A stretch of DNA of 64,000 nt from Octopus bimaculoides (taxonomy: Eukaryota). This document shows, piece by piece, positions 29,298-64,000 of the stretch. Position 1 is the stretch's first letter; every line of letters starts with the position of its first letter. The stretch lies in assembly GCF_001194135.2 (NCBI RefSeq), contig NC_068995.1, positions 51,293,243-51,357,242 of the forward strand, read 5' to 3'. The position numbers were made by a program, and so were the translations under genes. The notes under the pieces are model-generated. The model did not search any database. It was given only the letters and a program-made list of their open reading frames with translations, and had not been told where the DNA came from.

Positions 29298-29527
29298 CTG
29301 TATATCTATCTGTCTGTCTGTCTCTGTCTGTGTGTCTCTGTCTGTCTGTCTGTCTGTATGTATGTATGTATGTATGTCTGTACACCTTTCAATGCAATGT
29401 ATGCCAGAAGGTCTGCAGATCTACTCCTTCATGCACAAACACACATATACACACATATTTATAAGTAAAAACAGAATACAGAGAGAATACACACATATAC
29501 AAACACATATAAATGCATGTAACTTAC

Positions 29528-29649
29528 CTTTGGGAAGTTTTAGACTTGGTGCATCCATTGCCCAGGCGTACAAAATTGAAGGATTTGTACGACATGTTGG
29601 ACCAGTTGCATAGTGTCGAGAAACACTAGGTCCCATTTCTCCACAGTTC
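29528..29649 (-). CDS. Phm: PHM coding exon 4
   Basis: ttttaag| ... |gtaagt. (W)NCGEMGPSVSRHYATGPTCRTNPSILYAWAMDAPSLKLPK contains the ILYAWAxDAP motif. Confidence 0.95.
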
Positions 29650-30026
29650 CTTAAAAAGAAACGAAATCAATAACCAAAATGAAAAGATGGCATAAGGTAT
29701 TCTTTTTTTTTTCTTTTGTAGTCATTTGGCTACGGCCATGCTGGAGCACCGCCTTTAGTCAAGCAAATTGACCCCAACTGTCTCATTCTGCCTTTGTACA
29801 CAACAGAAGAAATGAGAAACAGAAAGAGGAAAATGTAATGACTATCAGTCTCCCAAAGTCATTAGCACCACGAGAGGAACTGATCCTAATAAATTAATGG
29901 AAACTGTGTTGACTGAAAGATGGCTTACACCAAACCACCTCCCCAACCCCTTCTGCCAAGATAAAGAATAAATTAGTGCCGAGATAAAGAATAAACTAGA
30001 AAGGTAGAGATTAAATATTTACATAC

Positions 30027-30114
30027 CAGATTTTGGTGTCTTTACCCGGTAAACCACAACCATACAAGAGAAGATGGTGAGCAGTTGCCATATTGGCATG
30101 GGGCTGGAAACCAA
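30027..30114 (-). CDS. Phm: PHM coding exon 3 (CuH ligands His-His)
   Basis: ctttcag| ... |gtatgt. GFQPHANMATAHHLLLYGCGLPGKDTKI(W); HH = rat H107/H108. Confidence 0.95.
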
Positions 30115-31035
30115 CTGAAAGAAGAAAGAAAAGGAAATAAATTAAATGAAAAACAAATTGATAAATAAGTAAATTAATACATAAAAACTACAAATTTTTG
30201 TACTCTTCTGGACTCATGTCAGGGTCCTGGAACTATATCGGTTGTGCTCATGCCTCCAAGAGCAAGTTACAGGCTTATTGCTGGTTGTACCAGCATTGAG
30301 TAGAAACTGCAATATATTTTTCAAATAGATCCCTCCACCTAAGGTTCAAACACATCTCATGTTAACCCATGCAACAGACAATGTGATATGATTATTTTCT
30401 TTTATCCCTTTTCATATTGTAGTTTTTGGTGGTCTTATTCACACCTAACTCCAAGGCTGTATTTGTATTGAACATGTGATGCTGTTCAATGGTGTATATA
30501 GCTCAAAGATCAGTGAGTCTCTCTATGTCAAACTGAAAATCTTCTACACTGAGAAGTCACATTTCTGGTACAGCAGACATGTGATTAGAATGTCACAACA
30601 AAGAATTGTAAGAGGATTCTTCAAGTTTAGTCAAGAGACCTCAGGGTTGACTAAGAATGAGAGCGATGGATAATATCCATAGTCTCAATTGGTTATGCTT
30701 AGGAATCCAGCCAGGAATTCTTATTTCTTTATTGCCCACAGGGGGATAAACATAGAGGGGATAAACAAGGACAGACAAAGGGATTAAGTCGATTACATCG
30801 ACCCCAGTACATAATTGGTACTTAATTTATCGACCTCGAAAGGATGAAAGGTAAAGTCGACCTCGGTGGAATTTGAACTCAGAACGTAGCGGTTGACTCA
30901 AAAGAATACACACCACCACCACCACCACCACCACCACCACAATGACAACATAAAAAACAAACAAACAAACAAACAAAAAGCATCTCAATTCTTAGTGGAA
31001 TACAAAAGTATCAAAGTAGTTGTTTTTCTTCTTAC

Positions 31036-31090
31036 TTATGTAGCTTGCCGTAGTATTTGCCTTCAAGGAGAGACATAAATACGTATCAAC
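31036..31090 (-). CDS. Phm: PHM coding exon 2
   Basis: ttttccag| ... |gtaaga. VDTYLCLSLKANTTASYI contains the DTYLC motif (rat Y79/C81 equivalents). Confidence 0.92.
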
Positions 31091-32215
31091 CTGGAAAAGA
31101 AAAATGAAAGAGAAACAATCAGCGATTAATACATAACGAGAGAAAACTTTAATTGAATTTGAGTTGTTTTATTTGACATTGTATATTGATTGTGGCCAAA
31201 GGTACAAGAGTAAAGACCACCGTTGACTGACTGGTATTTTGAATATTGTTTTTATAAGAGGTACAAAGGGCTAAATATTTGTGGAAAAGAGTAAATTTAC
31301 CTCAAAACTTTATTTTGTTAAGTGCAGGTATGGTTGTGTGTAAGGGACCTAGCTTGACCCTGCCTGAGATTTGAAACCAAATCTTCCCGCTTGTTGCTTG
31401 TCAAAGCAAGCAGGAAATCCTCTCCATGCTAGGTAATTGATGAAGAAACACTCGATGTCCTAGGATCTGTGCTGGTCAAGGAAAGGTCAGTCCTTTGTTT
31501 AGGGTTAGACCTACATTACTGACCACTCTATATAACAGGCTAGTCCTAATCAAGCTCTTAGGCATTCCAGCCATGATACTCTCATCTTTTTTAGGAGTAC
31601 CTAGGACTCCATTATATAATGTGCTGTTTTTGATTTTAAAACCAGAGGGTGTAAAATGACCATATTTGGCTGCTATTTCTAGAAAGTCAAGTGACTATTA
31701 GAGCCTCCCTCATTAACTCTGTTTTGTTGTCAAGGTGATGCTGAAATTTGCTGCACTAGAATCGTTGTTTTTATCCAAGGTCAACCATGACACCATAGAC
31801 TTTTGACCGAAGGTTCTTAAGTTTTGGTCAGCCCATCCATTTTTAAGGCACAATGTGTCCGGAATTACATCCCCTTTGATGAATGTATGTATCTCCTTGA
31901 TTTAAAACAGACAGCTGTGAGATTTGGCTGTTATTTGTAGCATGTCAAGCAGCCAGAGAAATTCCTGTGTTAAACTAGTGTCTGCGTCCATTATTCATCA
32001 TTTTAAATTTAGCAGCAATGATGGGGGAAGTACTGAAATCAATAGGAATATCATTGTGGCTGGCCATAAGATACTATCGACCAGCATCAATAAGGAATTT
32101 CCCGCATGTGGATATATATACATGGATATATATATTGATTTTGTTACATGCGCATGCACACACACACACACACGTACATACACACACATATATATTATAT
32201 ATATATGTATGTGTA

Positions 32216-32260
<45 letters not shown>

Positions 32261-32556
32261 NNNNNNNNNNNNNNNNNNNNNNNNNNNNNNNNNNNNNNNN
32301 NNNNNNNNNNNNNNNNNNNNNNNNNNNNNNNNNNNNNNNNNNNNNNNNNNNNNNNNNNNNNNNNNNNNNNNNNNNNNNNNNNNNNNNNNNNNNNNNNNNN
32401 NNNNNNNNNNNNNNNNNNNNNNNNNNNNNNNNNNNNNNNNNNNNNNNNNNNNNNNNNNNNNNNNNNNNNNNNNNNNNNNNNNNNNNNNNNNNNNNNNNNN
32501 NNNNNNNNNNNNNNNNNNNNNNNNNNNNNNNNNNNNNNNNNNNNNNNNNNNNNNNN

Positions 32557-32614
<58 letters not shown>

Positions 32615-33300
32615 GTATATAAATATATATATATATGAATATATATATATAAATAAATATATATATACACACAAATATATATATATACATGTGTGTGTGT
32701 GTGTATGTGTACATGTATCTAAAAAATTTAAAGCTTGGCAGTATGCCATTAAGATTGTTCTCCCAAACACATTCAACACCATCCACTGCAGTTGTCTGCA
32801 AATCCGCACAACTGCTGGGTGTGCATGGAACAACACAAAGTTCGCATGGATTACTATTCCCATCTTGTGAGAATTCATATCAACATATCAGCACCACCCA
32901 CTATTATGTTATTCAACACGTTTATAGTAACTGTCAGAAGCCATCTGAAGTATCAAGATGAATAATAGATAATACAGTTGAGTGCTCAGAATATTTCTTG
33001 GTCATCACCATTAATTTGTTATTGCAGTTCTGCAATAACTTTGTCCTGATCGAAATAATGGTTTCAAATTGATTTTGGTGCAAGACCAGCGATTGTTAGG
33101 GGCTAGTCAATTACATCGACCCCAGTGCTCAACTGGTACTTATTTCAGTGAACCTGTAAAAGATGAAAGGAAAGGTTGACTTCGGCAGGATTTGAGCTCA
33201 GAATGACAAGAACTGAAAGAAATGCTGCAAAGAATTTTGTATGGCATGCTAAGTAATCTGTCAGCTCATCACATTCCTTGACTGAAACCATAGGCAGAAA

Positions 33301-33588
33301 TGTGAAGGTGGCGAGATGTGAAGGTGGCGAGATGTGAAGGTGGCGAGATGTGAAGGTGGCGAGATGTGAAGGTGACGAGATGTGAAGGTAACGAGATGTG
33401 AAGGTGGCGAGATGTGAAGGTGGCGAGATGTGAAGGTAACGAGATGTGAAGGTAACGAGATGTGAAGGTGGCGAGATGTGAAGGTGACGAGATGTGAAGG
33501 TGACGAGATGTGAAGGTGGCGAGATGTGAAGGTGACGAGATGTGAAGGTAACGAGATGTGAAGGTGGCGAGATGTGAAGGTGACGAAA
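33301..33588. repeat. 16-bp minisatellite x18 in PHM coding intron 1
   Basis: Unit tgtgaaggt(ggc/gac/aac)gaga; explains the SPSHLVTFTSRHLHI-repeat ORFs. Confidence 0.95.
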
Positions 33589-33803
33589 TATTTAATGAAA
33601 GCAAGAATAAATCGCAAGAATAAACTATGGTGTCTCATTTTAGGAGACAGAATGACAAATGCCTGAAAGTTTAATACCCAATGAAGTTGCTTAACAAGCA
33701 ATACAGACATTGATCAAGTCACATTAGCAGCTTTCTGTCTCAGGATAATGCTTGTAATATTAGCAATACTTTAAAAAGAAACAAATGATATATGAATACT
33801 CAC

Positions 33804-57882: not shown

Positions 57883-58531
57883 CACACACACATATATGTG
57901 TGTGTGTAATTGTGTCTGTGTTTGTCCCCCAACATCGCTTGACAACCGATGTTGATGTGTTTACGTCCCCGTAACGTAGCGGTTCGGCAAAAGACACCGA
58001 TAGAATATGTACTAGGATTACAGAGAATAAGTCCTGGGGTCGATTTGCTCGACTAAAAGCGGTGCTCCAGCATGGCCGCAATCAAATGACTGGAAGAAGT
58101 AAAAGAATAAAGGAACCATTGAACATATTCTTCCGACATAGCATCTCCAAAACTTACAATTAGCCGGATATGTGTTTCCTTGCTCTTAGAAGAATGGTTG
58201 TGCAGCCGGAGGAGGTGACTTGGTGGTCGTTTCTTGCGGGTCGAACGAACACGCAAAGGTTTCTTCGCTGGCCGAACTAGTCACGGTGGTGGTCGGAGGT
58301 GGATGAAAACGGTGAAGATGATGATGGTGGTGGCGGTTACGATGTTGTTTCAATGACGTTTTCAACAATGATAAATGAGGAAAAAATGCGTGGGTAGATA
58401 GCGTGGGCGTGACTTTCAGCTCGGACAGTTCCATATATATTTATACCAATATGGTCGCACTCGTGCACTTGCACTCTTCTTCTCATATGCATATAAATAC
58501 ACACACACATACACATAATTACACACACATA

Positions 58532-59979: not shown

Positions 59980-60261
59980 TCACTTTTTTTTGTTTGTTTT
60001 GTCAATTCTATCGATGATTCGTTCACCGTACAACTTCAGTGAAGGCGGCAGTTCATATTTAACTCCCATCAACATGTCAAAGGGCAGCCAAACCCTCCCT
60101 GGTCCAAGGAATTTATTACTGGGACCCGTTTGAAGCTGGTTGACTACTTTGATGCTTGCCTCACCCGGAAACAACTCCCTGCTGAATGGTTTCAGGCGAA
60201 GGTCTTCGGCTATATCGAAGCCAAGGATATCTTTGCCACACTGCTTCCGGAGTCGGGATTC
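59980..60261 (-). CDS. YqaJ-like nuclease gene, probable last coding exon (93 aa + stop)
   Basis: Polypyrimidine tract + ttacag|GAA, phase 0 matching the upstream donor. Open frame ESRLRKQCGKDILGFDIAEDLRLKPFSRELFPGEASIKVV...IDKTNKKK-TGA. The intron contains an N-gap, so a hidden exon cannot be excluded. Confidence 0.72.
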   Translation of the reverse strand, partial: ESRLRKQCGKDILGFDIAEDLRLKPFSRELFPGEASIKVVNQLQTGPSNKFLGPGRVWLPFDMLMGVKYELPPSLKLYGERIIDRIDKTNKKK

Positions 60262-60439
60262 CTGTAATGAAGAGAAGACAAAAAAAAAAGTAAGGTCTGT
60301 GATTACACACACACACACAAACACATGTATGCACATATATTTTTATTAATATTTAATGGAAGCAACAACTAAATATTAATACAAAAATATATATATACTT
60401 ATATTTTGATTTCTATTTTACCTGTTTGCATCACCATAC

Positions 60440-60482
<43 letters not shown>

Positions 60483-62119
60483 NNNNNNNNNNNNNNNNNN
60501 NNNNNNNNNNNNNNNNNNNNNNNNNNNNNNNNNNNNNNNNNNNNNNNNNNNNNNNNNNNNNNNNNNNNNNNNNNNNNNNNNNNNNNNNNNNNNNNNNNNN
60601 NNNNNNNNNNNNNNNNNNNNNNNNNNNNNNNNNNNNNNNNNNNNNNNNNNNNNNNNNNNNNNNNNNNNNNNNNNNNNNNNNNNNNNNNNNNNNNNNNNNN
60701 NNNNNNNNNNNNNNNNNNNNNNNNNNNNNNNNNNNNNNNNNNNNNNNNNNNNNNNNNNNNNNNNNNNNNNNNNNNNNNNNNNNNNNNNNNNNNNNNNNNN
60801 NNNNNNNNNNNNNNNNNNNNNNNNNNNNNNNNNNNNNNNNNNNNNNNNNNNNNNNNNNNNNNNNNNNNNNNNNNNNNNNNNNNNNNNNNNNNNNNNNNNN
60901 NNNNNNNNNNNNNNNNNNNNNNNNNNNNNNNNNNNNNNNNNNNNNNNNNNNNNNNNNNNNNNNNNNNNNNNNNNNNNNNNNNNNNNNNNNNNNNNNNNNN
61001 NNNNNNNNNNNNNNNNNNNNNNNNNNNNNNNNNNNNNNNNNNNNNNNNNNNNNNNNNNNNNNNNNNNNNNNNNNNNNNNNNNNNNNNNNNNNNNNNNNNN
61101 NNNNNNNNNNNNNNNNNNNNNNNNNNNNNNNNNNNNNNNNNNNNNNNNNNNNNNNNNNNNNNNNNNNNNNNNCAAAGAAATCGATAGAATAAGTACTAGG
61201 CTTTTAAAGAATAAGTACTGGGGTCAATTCGTTCAGCTAAAAATATTCAAGGCGGTGCCCCAGTATGGCCGCAGTCTAATGCATGAAACAAATAAAAGAT
61301 ATCAGCGTGGAGCAACATCCAGCAGTGAAACAGAAATAGTGGTACGAATGCCTGACTGAATTATCTCCCTTCCACGTCAATCACTATTTTGTAAGAAACC
61401 AATGAAATTAGTAGAAATATGGTGGTCGAAATAAACAGCTTCATCATCGTTGTTTAACGTCTGCTTTCCATGCTGGCATGGGTTGGATGGTTTGACTGAG
61501 AACTGGCAAGCCAGGAGACTGCACCAAGCTCCAATCGGATCTGGCAAAGTTTCTACAGCTGGATGCCCTTCCTAACGTCAACCACTCTGAGAGTGTAGTG
61601 GGTGCTTTTTACGTGCCACTAGCACAGGGGTCAGTCTGGTGACACTGGCATCGACCATGCTCGAATGGTGCTTTTTACGTGCCTCTGGCATGGGAGCCAG
61701 TCAAGGGGCACTGATGCAGTACCAGGCAGTGGCTTTCACCAACAGTCAGTTAATATAAACATTTGGTTAACATCAGCAGTCAATTACCATGAACAGTTGG
61801 TTAACAAGTAAGTTAACATAAATAATGAACATATACAGCTAGATAATACCAATAATCCTTTCTACCATAGGCACAAGGCCTGGAATTGTGAGGGAGGGGG
61901 CCAGTAGATTACATCGACCCCAGTACATAACTGGTAATTATCTTATCAACCTCAAAAAGATAAAAGGTAAAGTTGACTTCAGTGGAATTTGAACTCAGAA
62001 TGTGAAGACACGAAATATTACTAAGTATTTCGCCCAGCATGCAAACGATTCTGCCAGAACATTCGTTTAATAACAATTACATGAGGAAATCAATTTTATG
62101 ATAAAAATTTGCAACAAAC

Positions 62120-62719
62120 CTTTAAAACTTGACAAAAAGCTATCAATTCCATAGAGATATATTGCCAATATTCACGGCAGAAGTGAACTCGTTTTAGCAT
62201 AATCTCTTTCGTTTTTACACAAACTGCCACAAAGTCACACCATTGCATTCGACAGATTGCCATTTGTCCTTGAATCTGGGCCATATATGCTCGTGGAATG
62301 CCATGGATGAGATTATCTCCAGAGTACAGTTTATAGATGGGGGCTTTGAATTCAGCAAGTCCAATAGTCCAGTTCAACCCACTTCCTTCACAAACCAAAG
62401 CATCAGGGGAAGCCCCAACATAACCAGCTAACAAGTCACTCTCTTGTGGAACCCAAAATCCAGTCTCATTTGTTTTACAGCCAGTTAATAGTTCGTAAGC
62501 TTCTCCAATGATTTTTTCCATTTTAATTCCATGACTCATATTTCGAGTTTGTTCATTTTCTTCTTGGTAATGCTCACTGTCAACTATTAGGGAGACAAAA
62601 AAATCATAGGGCTTGCCTCTGCCAAGACCAAGTGCTTCACCAAATTTAGAAGCTGTCAGGGTTACTTTTTTACGAGCTTCAAACCATTCTGGAGTTCTTT
62701 GCTTCACTTTAACTTCCAT
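62120..62719 (-). CDS. YqaJ-like viral recombinase / lambda-exonuclease-family PD-(D/E)xK nuclease, main coding exon
   Basis: MEVKVKQRTPEWFEARKKVTLTASKFGEALG...HGIKMEK...GASPDALV...LAEFKAP...YMAQIQGQMAICRMQWCDF shows the recognisable YqaJ motifs. Acceptor ttttcttttacag| at 62757, probable ATG at 62719, donor AAG|gtttgt at 62120 (phase 0). Confidence 0.88.
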
Positions 62720-63651
62720 CCTGGTTATTATTAATGGTATGCTTCCTAATGCTGGAGCTGTAAAAGAAAAAAACAAAAAATTAACATGCTTGCTTCAGCA
62801 AGGAATCTTAATTTAATTTTTGGGGTTTAAATTAATATAAAACGTCGGTTATTTTGAAGCCAATATAGATATAAGACCTATGCTTCTATTCCTCCTTACT
62901 GAATTTTATTATTTGTTAACTAAAGAATTTTTGCATGCAATGCCATATAACCTACATGACCGATTTTGGTGAAAACGAAAAGAAATGTAAGGGAGACAAC
63001 CCCGACACTTTAATTAAATTCCTTTGTTAAACTTAACTCATTTATTTAAAAGATTGATTTAATATTTTAAAAACGAAGTGAGGAAGGAGAGGATATTACA
63101 GTGACATCTATCCCTTCTTATCTTCTAATTGTTTTGTAAATAGATTTTATAGCTTCTTTACGTGGTCGCAAAGCTAAAGTGTTAAAACGAAATCGTTGGG
63201 CGAAAAGCGGAAGACTAACTTGGATCGGTTCCAGTTTGCAGTAGCCTATAGCTTCCTTATCTCAATCGACAAGTTAACGACGGAACATTTATGTGGTCGC
63301 TCGATCGGCTGACAATAACAGTTAAATCTCTCACAAATCAAACTCTACTCTCTTATAAAATGAAGGAAAAAAACTTTAAAAAAATGCAGGATGGTCACAA
63401 CTTAAATATTTTCGTAATAGGGTTTCTTCAGCAGAGCTAACCTTGGTTATAAAAACAACGACAGCAATTATTTAATTAATCAAGATTAATATGTGAAACA
63501 AAATAACATTCCGCGAAATATTCACGCGCAAAGTTATTAATCAACGCACGGAAACAAATTAAAAACAACAAGAAAAAAAATGGAAAACGAAAAGTCATGC
63601 ATGTCTTAATCTCAAATGTATTTGTTCTTGTATTACAATACCAAAGCTTAC

Positions 63652-63750
63652 CTGTAAAATAAGTTTATAAACAACTTTTCAATTCTCCGTAAATAAACAA
63701 AAACAAATTTCTTGATTATTTTCATGAGAATATTTCAATCTCTCATATTG
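63652..63750 (-). other. Putative non-coding 5' exon of the YqaJ-like gene (upstream boundary uncertain)
   Basis: Strong donor CAG|gtaagc at 63652/63651. An in-frame TAA upstream implies ATG 62719 is the start. Surrounding DNA is CpG-rich. Confidence 0.4.
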
Positions 63751-64000
63751 AAGAGTTCGACTGAAATTATTTGCAATTAGAGTTACCTACCATTATTAGA
63801 CCTTTTTACCAACATCATTAAAAATATACTCTTTTACTCTTCTACTTGTTTCAGTCATTTGACTGCGGCCATGCCGGAGCACTGCCTTTAGTCACGCAAA
63901 TCGACCCCAGGACTTATTCTTTGTAAGCCTAGTACTTATTCTAACGGTCTATGTTGCCGAACCGCTAAGTTACGGGGACGTAAGCACACCAGCATCGGTT

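Follow-up and report, generated by a model that had tools for sequence, protein, structure and literature searches.

An intron-bearing YqaJ nuclease gene of Octopus bimaculoides as a probable member of an old, single-copy family of choanoflagellates and animals

The YqaJ nucleases against which an animal gene can be set include LHK-Exo of Laribacter hongkongensis (3syy) and lambda exonuclease (Red-alpha, 1avq/3sm4), the mimivirus protein R354 (the 'Cas4-like' nuclease of MIMIVIRE, 5yet/5yeu) and YqaJ proteins of the nucleocytoplasmic large DNA viruses (NCLDV), the second open reading frame (ORF2) of ISL2EU elements together with YqaJ genes of molluscan transposable elements (TEs) or endogenous viral elements (EVEs), and the kinetoplastid proteins labelled 'YqaJ-like viral recombinase domain' in Trypanosoma cruzi, T. 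theileri and T. grayi. The YqaJ genes of molluscs and other animals are routinely dismissed as transposon or viral debris. Here we analyze one such gene, LOC106870791 of Octopus bimaculoides, which lies on the minus strand of a stretch of 64,000 nucleotides (contig NC_068995.1, positions 51,293,243 to 51,357,242 of assembly GCF_001194135.2), hereafter the window. We conclude that it is probably an ordinary host gene of the nucleus, built of one exon of 5'-untranslated region (5'UTR) and two coding exons, and a member of an old, small, single-copy family of choanoflagellates and animals.

The predicted structure of the octopus protein has the same PD-(D/E)XK fold as LHK-Exo and lambda exonuclease, and its sequence shares with them the motifs QR..EW..R, TAS, E, SPD, ExK, YmaQiQ and WCDF and the equivalent of the arginine that contacts the 5'-phosphate. 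In contrast to these enzymes, the octopus gene is eukaryotic, intron-containing and stand-alone, with no adjacent Red-beta or RecT, and identity to them is only 18-26%; further, the octopus gene has a conserved C-terminal extension of 93 aa that neither the phage nor the bacterial enzymes carry. R354 and the NCLDV proteins likewise have the core and catalytic motifs seen in the octopus, but they are intron-less, are larger or differently extended and do not have the choanozoan tail; in sequence, they are no nearer to the octopus family than the phage enzymes are. With ISL2EU ORF2 and the TE or EVE genes of molluscs, the octopus gene has the Pfam domain and the host phylum in common. Whereas those genes are multi-copy, adjacent to DDE or THAP transposases, bounded by terminal inverted repeats (TIRs) and often fused to PHD or herpesvirus alkaline-exonuclease-like regions (PMC4482050, and the mollusc protein P0119 in our set), the octopus gene is seen as one copy per locus, is syntenic, has neither transposase nor TIRs and falls in a separate score tier. 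The kinetoplastid proteins are also stand-alone cellular genes of eukaryotes. At 92-98 bits, they come closer to the family than any other named relative outside it, and in a neighbor-joining (NJ) tree they form its sister group with 64% support. They differ in their length of 450-520 aa, with C-terminal regions unrelated to that of the octopus protein and without its PGE..I.V and GPS.VW..FDFLMG motifs, and they too are uncharacterized.

The gene had been picked out in a first-pass annotation, made from the letters alone, as an intact open reading frame (ORF) with canonical splice sites and a list of recognizable YqaJ motifs. All of these are present, and the join of the coding exons is identical to the 293-aa RefSeq protein XP_014772477.1 (P0128 in our set; UniProt A0A0L8HGX9), an 'uncharacterized protein' of O. 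bimaculoides; the gene model is thus already in the public annotation, without an assigned function. A Pfam search and structure prediction, both of which had been proposed as checks, bear out the assignment. The Pfam YqaJ profile (PF09588) matches residues 11-156 with E = 2.3e-18 and 67.3 bits (the cut-off is 22), and the alignment takes in positions 1-147 of the 150 in the profile. The motifs are QRTPEW (residues 7-12), TASKFG (22-27), HGIKME (63-68), GASPD (102-106), EFK (123-125), YMAQIQGQM (145-153) and WCDF (160-163). A profile built from 20 family members and compared with the PDB recovered LHK-Exo (3syy, 4e-16), mimivirus R354 (5e-10) and lambda exonuclease (3e-3) with the motifs in register. 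The AlphaFold2 (AF2) model of the whole protein, with a mean per-residue confidence (pLDDT) of 88.5 and a predicted template-modelling score (pTM) of 0.85, retrieved the same enzymes in a Foldseek search, namely LHK-Exo (E = 2.8e-10, TM score 0.75 on the target), lambda exonuclease (5e-8) and R354 (3e-7); the top matches, 3syy, 3sz4, 3sm4, 1avq and 6m9k, each had a probability of 1.00.

In these alignments, E68, D106 (of SPD), E123 and K125 (of EFK) correspond to the conserved motifs of LHK-Exo and lambda exonuclease (W..R, E, SPD and ExK), and R16, in EWFEAR, aligns with the arginine of WHKLR in lambda exonuclease and of WFAAR in LHK-Exo. The lambda residue in question is R28, which in that enzyme (3sm4) binds the terminal 5'-phosphate of the strand being degraded. 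The four acidic and lysine residues are kept in every named orthologue, and R16 in nearly all, the exceptions among the named members being the sponge model (R16 to C) and Lottia (R16 to K). By alignment and by predicted structure alike, these comparisons show the N-terminal 200 aa to be a PD-(D/E)XK domain of the lambda-exonuclease/LHK-Exo type, with a complete predicted metal-binding and catalytic set. The four iron-sulfur cysteines of Cas4-type nucleases were looked for in the family alignment, where only C161, C167 and C196 are conserved, and Cas4 structures were weak Foldseek matches (E about 3e-4, TM about 0.3). Of these, C161, in WCDF, is general to YqaJ; C167 and C196 hardly vary among the animal members of the family and show no conservation in the phage enzymes.

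The remainder of the protein, residues 201-293, is conserved across phyla as a 93-aa tail with the motifs PGE..I.V.NLL and GPS.VW..FDFLMG, then ID, and then a basic patch that in many orthologues takes the form of a terminal KKRK or KRRK. Searched alone, the tail matched no Pfam family. Its own AF2 model reached a pTM of 0.37 (whole protein, 0.85), and a Foldseek search of the PDB with it found no structure at E <= 0.001. A database search with a tail profile recovered only four short fragments, the known family itself not being among them. The tail may tune oligomerization, access to DNA or the binding of a partner.

Full-length orthologues with this tail, at 44-80% identity and ~98% coverage, are widespread among molluscs. 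They were found in cephalopods (Argonauta and decapodiform cephalopods), bivalves (Pinctada, Crassostrea, Saccostrea, Mytilus, Ruditapes and two unionids) and gastropods (Lottia, Patella and Haliotis). Beyond the molluscs, they occur in echinoderms (Acanthaster, Patiria and Amphiura), hemichordates (Glandiceps and Ptychodera), the homoscleromorph sponge Corticium candelabrum and six choanoflagellates, namely Choanoeca flexa, C. perplexa, Salpingoeca macrocollata, S. punica, Hartaetosiga gracilis and Codosiga hollandica. The family is nevertheless small: when 1.84 billion representative proteins were scanned exhaustively with HMMER, only 39 clusters (50% identity) came out at E <= 1e-30, and among the named matches there was none from a vertebrate, arthropod, nematode or cnidarian. 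A cliff in the scores, from more than 200 bits within the family to 131 bits or less outside it, sets its boundary. The gene tree was built by NJ only, with bootstrapping, and its deep nodes are weak. In it the family is monophyletic (81% bootstrap) with the choanoflagellates basal; the cephalopods, oysters, patellogastropods, unionids and asteroids are each recovered at 100%, Ambulacraria at 69% and the animals as a clade at only 20%.

The coding sequence (CDS) has three introns in Pinctada and at least five in Acanthaster. The intron at the boundary between nuclease and tail is shared: Pinctada agrees with Octopus in both residue and phase, a mytilid-like contig agrees in the residue, and in a further animal contig the intron sits at roughly this position. 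Taken together, distribution, tree and introns suggest that the gene was present in the choanozoan ancestor and was inherited vertically with losses, unlike what would be expected of a capture within cephalopods or molluscs. They point to an ancient choanozoan cellular gene and not to a recent viral or transposon capture. The first-pass annotation had proposed a virus- or transposon-derived nuclease domesticated by the host. The part of this that stands is the intact, spliced and apparently single-copy cellular gene; domestication from a virus or transposon is not demonstrated and, as it was worded, sits poorly with a 293-aa architecture that, tail included, is common to molluscs, echinoderms, hemichordates, a sponge and choanoflagellates. 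The same annotation had named a well-annotated pan-metazoan orthologue of known function as the finding that would count against it; what we found are orthologues in several phyla, none of them characterized.

The sequences nearest to the family from outside are the kinetoplastid YqaJ proteins and environmental sequences, with phage-type endonucleases further out. Two environmental contigs, a 1.39-Mb one from ENA (L011) and a 135-kb one from JGI (L012), carry the nearest non-family YqaJ genes; both are compact and densely packed and code for eukaryote-type domains. One such environmental protein, P0165, groups with Trypanosoma at 100% bootstrap in the NJ tree, which suggests a chromosome of an uncultured kinetoplastid. 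Metagenome proteins of about 200 aa with 49-56% identity to the octopus protein (P0019, P0036 and others) were considered as bacterial or viral donors and rejected, being ORFs of the first coding exon of the animal gene. Their contigs from ENA and JGI (L005-L010; proteins of 196-207 aa) are gene-poor and contain reverse transcriptases of long-terminal-repeat (LTR) elements and long interspersed elements (LINEs), and the tail exon lies ~1.1 kb downstream, starting at or next to the boundary residue of the octopus gene. By these features, the contigs are best classed as animal sequences in datasets labelled as metagenomes.

The gene itself consists of two minus-strand coding exons (62719-62120 and 60261-59980), which join in phase 0 between K200 and E201 into a 293-aa ORF without a stop or frameshift, preceded by an untranslated exon (Table 1). 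The upstream junction at 63652/62757, which had been proposed earlier from the letters alone, is upheld by a conserved donor (ACAG/GTAAGC at 63652/63651) and by the annotated gene start of O. vulgaris, the aligned region of the O. vulgaris chromosome (L001, 10001-10143) being 91% identical. The ratio of observed to expected CpG is 0.28-0.54 across 61501-63000, which takes in coding exon 2 and adjoining intron sequence, and 1.25-1.35 across 63001-64000, in intron 1 and at the 5' end, both from small counts; this agrees with the earlier remark on CpG decay in the intronic repeats of the gene and CpG-rich DNA upstream, and is the pattern expected of a methylated gene body and an unmethylated promoter.

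Table 1. Positions in the window of the parts of LOC106870791 and of selected codons
Feature	Position	Strand	Basis	Details
Exon 1, 5'UTR only	63652..63793	-	Homology to annotated O. vulgaris gene start	Start approximate
Intron 1	62758..63651	-	Splice sites	CpG-rich (observed/expected 1.26)
Exon 2, aa 1-200	62120..62757	-	ORF, splice sites, Pfam, tblastn (aa 1-200 = 62719-62120 at 100%)	Entire YqaJ/lambda-exonuclease domain; ATG at 62719; acceptor tttacag/CTCC, donor TTAAAG/gtttgt
Active-site codon span	62345..62674	-		R16 62674-62672, E68 62518-62516, D106 62404-62402, E123 62353-62351, K125 62347-62345
Conserved cysteine codons		-	Family alignment	C161 62239-62237, C167 62221-62219, C196 62134-62132
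Intron 2 (phase 0)	60262..62119	-		Holds assembly gap 60483-61172, (TA)n 60429-60482 and SINE-like copy 61182-61299
Exon 3, coding part, aa 201-293 (tail) and stop	59980..60261	-	ORF, splice sites, tblastn	Acceptor cattacag/GAATCC; TGA stop 59982-59980

The gap in intron 2, a run of 690 N and one of nine assembly gaps in the window, separates the two coding exons and thus raises the question of whether the ORF is an artefact of joining across it. The gap is entirely intronic: it begins 947 nt past the donor, stops 222 nt short of the acceptor and leaves all coding bases and both splice sites intact and readable; its edges are a (TA)n run and a SINE-like repeat (resembling short interspersed elements), the usual cause of a break in assembly. 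Its flanks are collinear with the O. vulgaris intron (61173-61738 with L001 18092-17520, and 59793-60456 with L001 21102-20411), where the equivalent of the gap is ~2.3 kb of unbroken intron. In the gap-free assemblies of two other species, both coding exons and their junction recur: the coding exons are at L001 15439-16038 and 20626-20907 in O. vulgaris, with a contiguous intron of ~4.6 kb between them, and at L002 10001-10600 and 11705-11986 in Argonauta hians, with an intron of 1.1 kb. Further, the decapodiform orthologue is present as one unbroken CDS of 885 nt in L013, a 1172-nt contig of a public sequencing run, which is a spliced transcript with the junction in it. In all, contigs of 1.1-1.2 kb with an uninterrupted full CDS, which are spliced transcripts, come from public runs of a decapodiform cephalopod and of oysters. 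The joining artefact is already refuted by these observations, and its probability is practically nil.

The sequence comparisons indicate strong purifying selection. The ratio of non-synonymous to synonymous substitution rates (dN/dS) against O. vulgaris is 0.052 (24 synonymous vs 5 non-synonymous differences), with 0.016 for the nuclease and 0.116 for the tail; against Argonauta it is 0.073 overall and 0.06 for the tail, with dS saturated. Neither value is near 1, the outcome that had been named in advance as adverse to a host gene. The locus is also syntenic: window 29434-63828 is collinear with the O. vulgaris chromosome at 81-93% nucleotide identity. A p450 gene lies upstream in O. vulgaris and a Cu2-monooxygenase gene downstream, in conserved order, in both octopus species. 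The gene is apparently single-copy in the loci seen, as tblastn found no second copy in the 64-kb window (next-best E > 0.2) and none in the 91-kb O. vulgaris locus; moreover, there is one contig per species cluster. Extra matches beside the Argonauta gene, taken as a candidate for a diverged tandem copy, turned out to be exons of Pinctada and Acanthaster.

One reading against which these data need to be set is that the gene is the cargo of an active or recent transposon, such as an ORF2 of the ISL2EU type, or came in with a recent integration of a giant virus or herpes-like virus. Most YqaJ-domain genes of molluscs are counted as TE- or EVE-associated, and they can be numerous (PMC10225492; PMC7826175), ISL2EU ORF2 has a YqaJ domain (PMC4482050), and the octopus gene is itself bracketed by an inverted pair of 171 nt (57944-58114 and 63830-64000). 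This pair, however, was rejected as TIRs because it belongs to a dispersed SINE-like repeat of ~171 nt, with 11 copies in the window (including both members of the pair and the one at 61182-61299) and 27 in the 91-kb O. vulgaris locus. No TIRs were found around the gene, and neither the long ORFs of the window nor the neighboring genes that were called contain a transposase or viral domain, in line with what the first-pass annotation had noted of the flanks. The introns and a dN/dS of ~0.05 speak against transposon cargo, and P0119, a TE-type mollusc protein with PHD, YqaJ and alkaline-exonuclease regions, scores just 52 bits where family members exceed 200. As for a virus, the gene is spliced, collinear in O. 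vulgaris, present in Argonauta and has host neighbors, none of which fits an endogenous giant-virus or herpes-like element; the window holds no ORF for an annealing protein (Red-beta, RecT or ERF) such as would make up the phage two-component system. We regard this reading as effectively refuted and highly improbable. A far older capture is another matter. The gene might ultimately stem from a phage or giant virus and have been taken up by the host before the choanoflagellate-animal split, more than 600 million years ago, to be transmitted vertically from then on, a history that is compatible with the host gene that we favor. Given that YqaJ is overwhelmingly a family of phages and large DNA viruses, such an origin is plausible; the best structural matches in BFVD include proteins of phages, Pithovirus, medusavirus and the Mimiviridae member ChoanoV1 (33% identity), the next sequences beyond the eukaryotic tiers are 'phage-type endonucleases', and trees of the NCLDV YqaJ proteins suggest repeated exchange with phages (PMC3493329). 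Nonetheless, the closest non-family sequences group with cellular kinetoplastid proteins and themselves lie on compact, eukaryote-looking contigs, and the tail is absent from all viral matches. On balance we hold ancient viral capture to be a serious possibility, though somewhat short of an even chance.

For the host gene, the fold, the kept catalytic residues and R16 lead us to predict exonuclease activity. The octopus protein is most likely an active, Mg2+-dependent exonuclease acting on double-stranded DNA ends in the 5'->3' direction, a prediction drawn from sequence and model. It would load on 5'-phosphorylated ends of double-stranded DNA, digest the 5' strand 5'->3' and leave a 3' single-stranded tail, working without an adjacent annealing partner of the phage kind. 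Its most likely role would be to process or destroy linear DNA ends, either in recombination and repair or in the clearance of foreign or extrachromosomal linear DNA. The lack of an N-terminal presequence and the basic C-terminal patch seen in many orthologues make a nuclear or nucleo-cytoplasmic protein more likely than an organellar one. A bolder proposal is that of an ancestral choanozoan exonuclease for end resection or against linear DNA, with its own C-terminal regulatory module and independent of MRN, EXO1 and DNA2; this may take the form of a distinct recombination pathway or of the destruction of viral or extrachromosomal linear DNA. We consider it rather doubtful. Since vertebrates, arthropods and nematodes are missing from the named matches, these lineages may have lost the gene, which would explain why it has not been studied. 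It is also conceivable that the fold has been kept for another substrate or compartment, as in the turnover of mitochondrial DNA by MGME1 or the decay of RNA by the herpesvirus SOX, or for a structural, non-catalytic role. PD-(D/E)XK nucleases have changed substrate repeatedly, MGME1 (E = 3.7e-3) and SOX of Kaposi's sarcoma-associated herpesvirus (KSHV; E = 0.11) are weak structural matches, two decapodiform transcripts have substitutions in the catalytic site and the tail has no assigned function. This is unlikely, however, in that the orthologues have no N-terminal presequence, exonucleases of double-stranded DNA ends are by far the best matches, the 5'-phosphate arginine is kept and the catalytic tetrad is retained in every named species.

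Several points weigh against the picture of an active host exonuclease. The two decapodiform transcripts are changed at conserved sites, P0003 with H63N and E68G and P0004 with K125E at the catalytic lysine, so that catalysis may be dispensable in some lineages; the changes may reflect relaxed constraint, loss of catalysis in that lineage or variants of assembly. The octopus protein reaches only 42.8 bits against a cut-off of 68.05 for the NCBIfam model TIGR03033 (phage_rel_nuc), which places it by score as related to this bacterial and phage subfamily but outside it. Processivity in lambda exonuclease and LHK-Exo needs a toroidal trimer. The tail is modelled confidently only together with the core and is thus probably a family-specific module packed on the nuclease body, as judged from confidence scores only. 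Finally, in the literature on animals, plants and trypanosomes, we found no functional study or paper on the family of the octopus gene.

What is new here is that a clade spanning the choanozoans, with a C-terminal module of its own, can be separated from the TE-borne copies. This clade is a small group of genes that are single-copy, intron-bearing and under strong purifying selection, present in choanoflagellates and several animal phyla, with a module at the C-terminus that has no known relative. If the enzyme is active, animals would ancestrally have possessed a phage-type 5'-3' exonuclease of DNA ends, the role of which is testable in tractable carriers, such as sea stars, oysters and possibly choanoflagellates. 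For annotation, the host gene can be told from a TE-borne YqaJ gene by the tail motifs PGE..I.V.NLL and GPS.VW..FDFLMG together with the intron at the nuclease/tail boundary.

A search with the PADLOC models of defense systems gave no match. All orthologues begin at ME..V.QRS, directly at the domain, and the N-terminal extension or targeting peptide of isoform models from O. vulgaris and O. sinensis was rejected, as it is not conserved and is closed in the window by in-frame stops and a 1-nt T indel. As annotated, the O. vulgaris gene is 71 kb long (L001 10001-81355), and its end lies 3 nt short of the Cu2-monooxygenase gene. In one O. vulgaris isoform of 268 aa (P0127), the last ~59 residues of the tail are replaced by EERAVGRHTNL; the isoform may be a true tail-less variant, or else the product of read-through or mis-annotation.

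Further along the window, an exon at 18879-19373 on the minus strand codes for the C-terminal end of a copper type II ascorbate-dependent monooxygenase domain (PF03712, E = 1e-5), while window 29434-33600 aligns with L001 81359-91355. The Cu2-monooxygenase gene is downstream on the same strand in O. vulgaris as well, and local synteny is thus conserved; in Acanthaster, the neighbors of the orthologue are WD40 and MFS genes. At 33300-33586 there is a minisatellite with a 16-nt unit (consensus ATGTGAAGGTGACGAG, 17.9 copies, 94% matches), which gives rise to long spurious ORFs on the minus strand.

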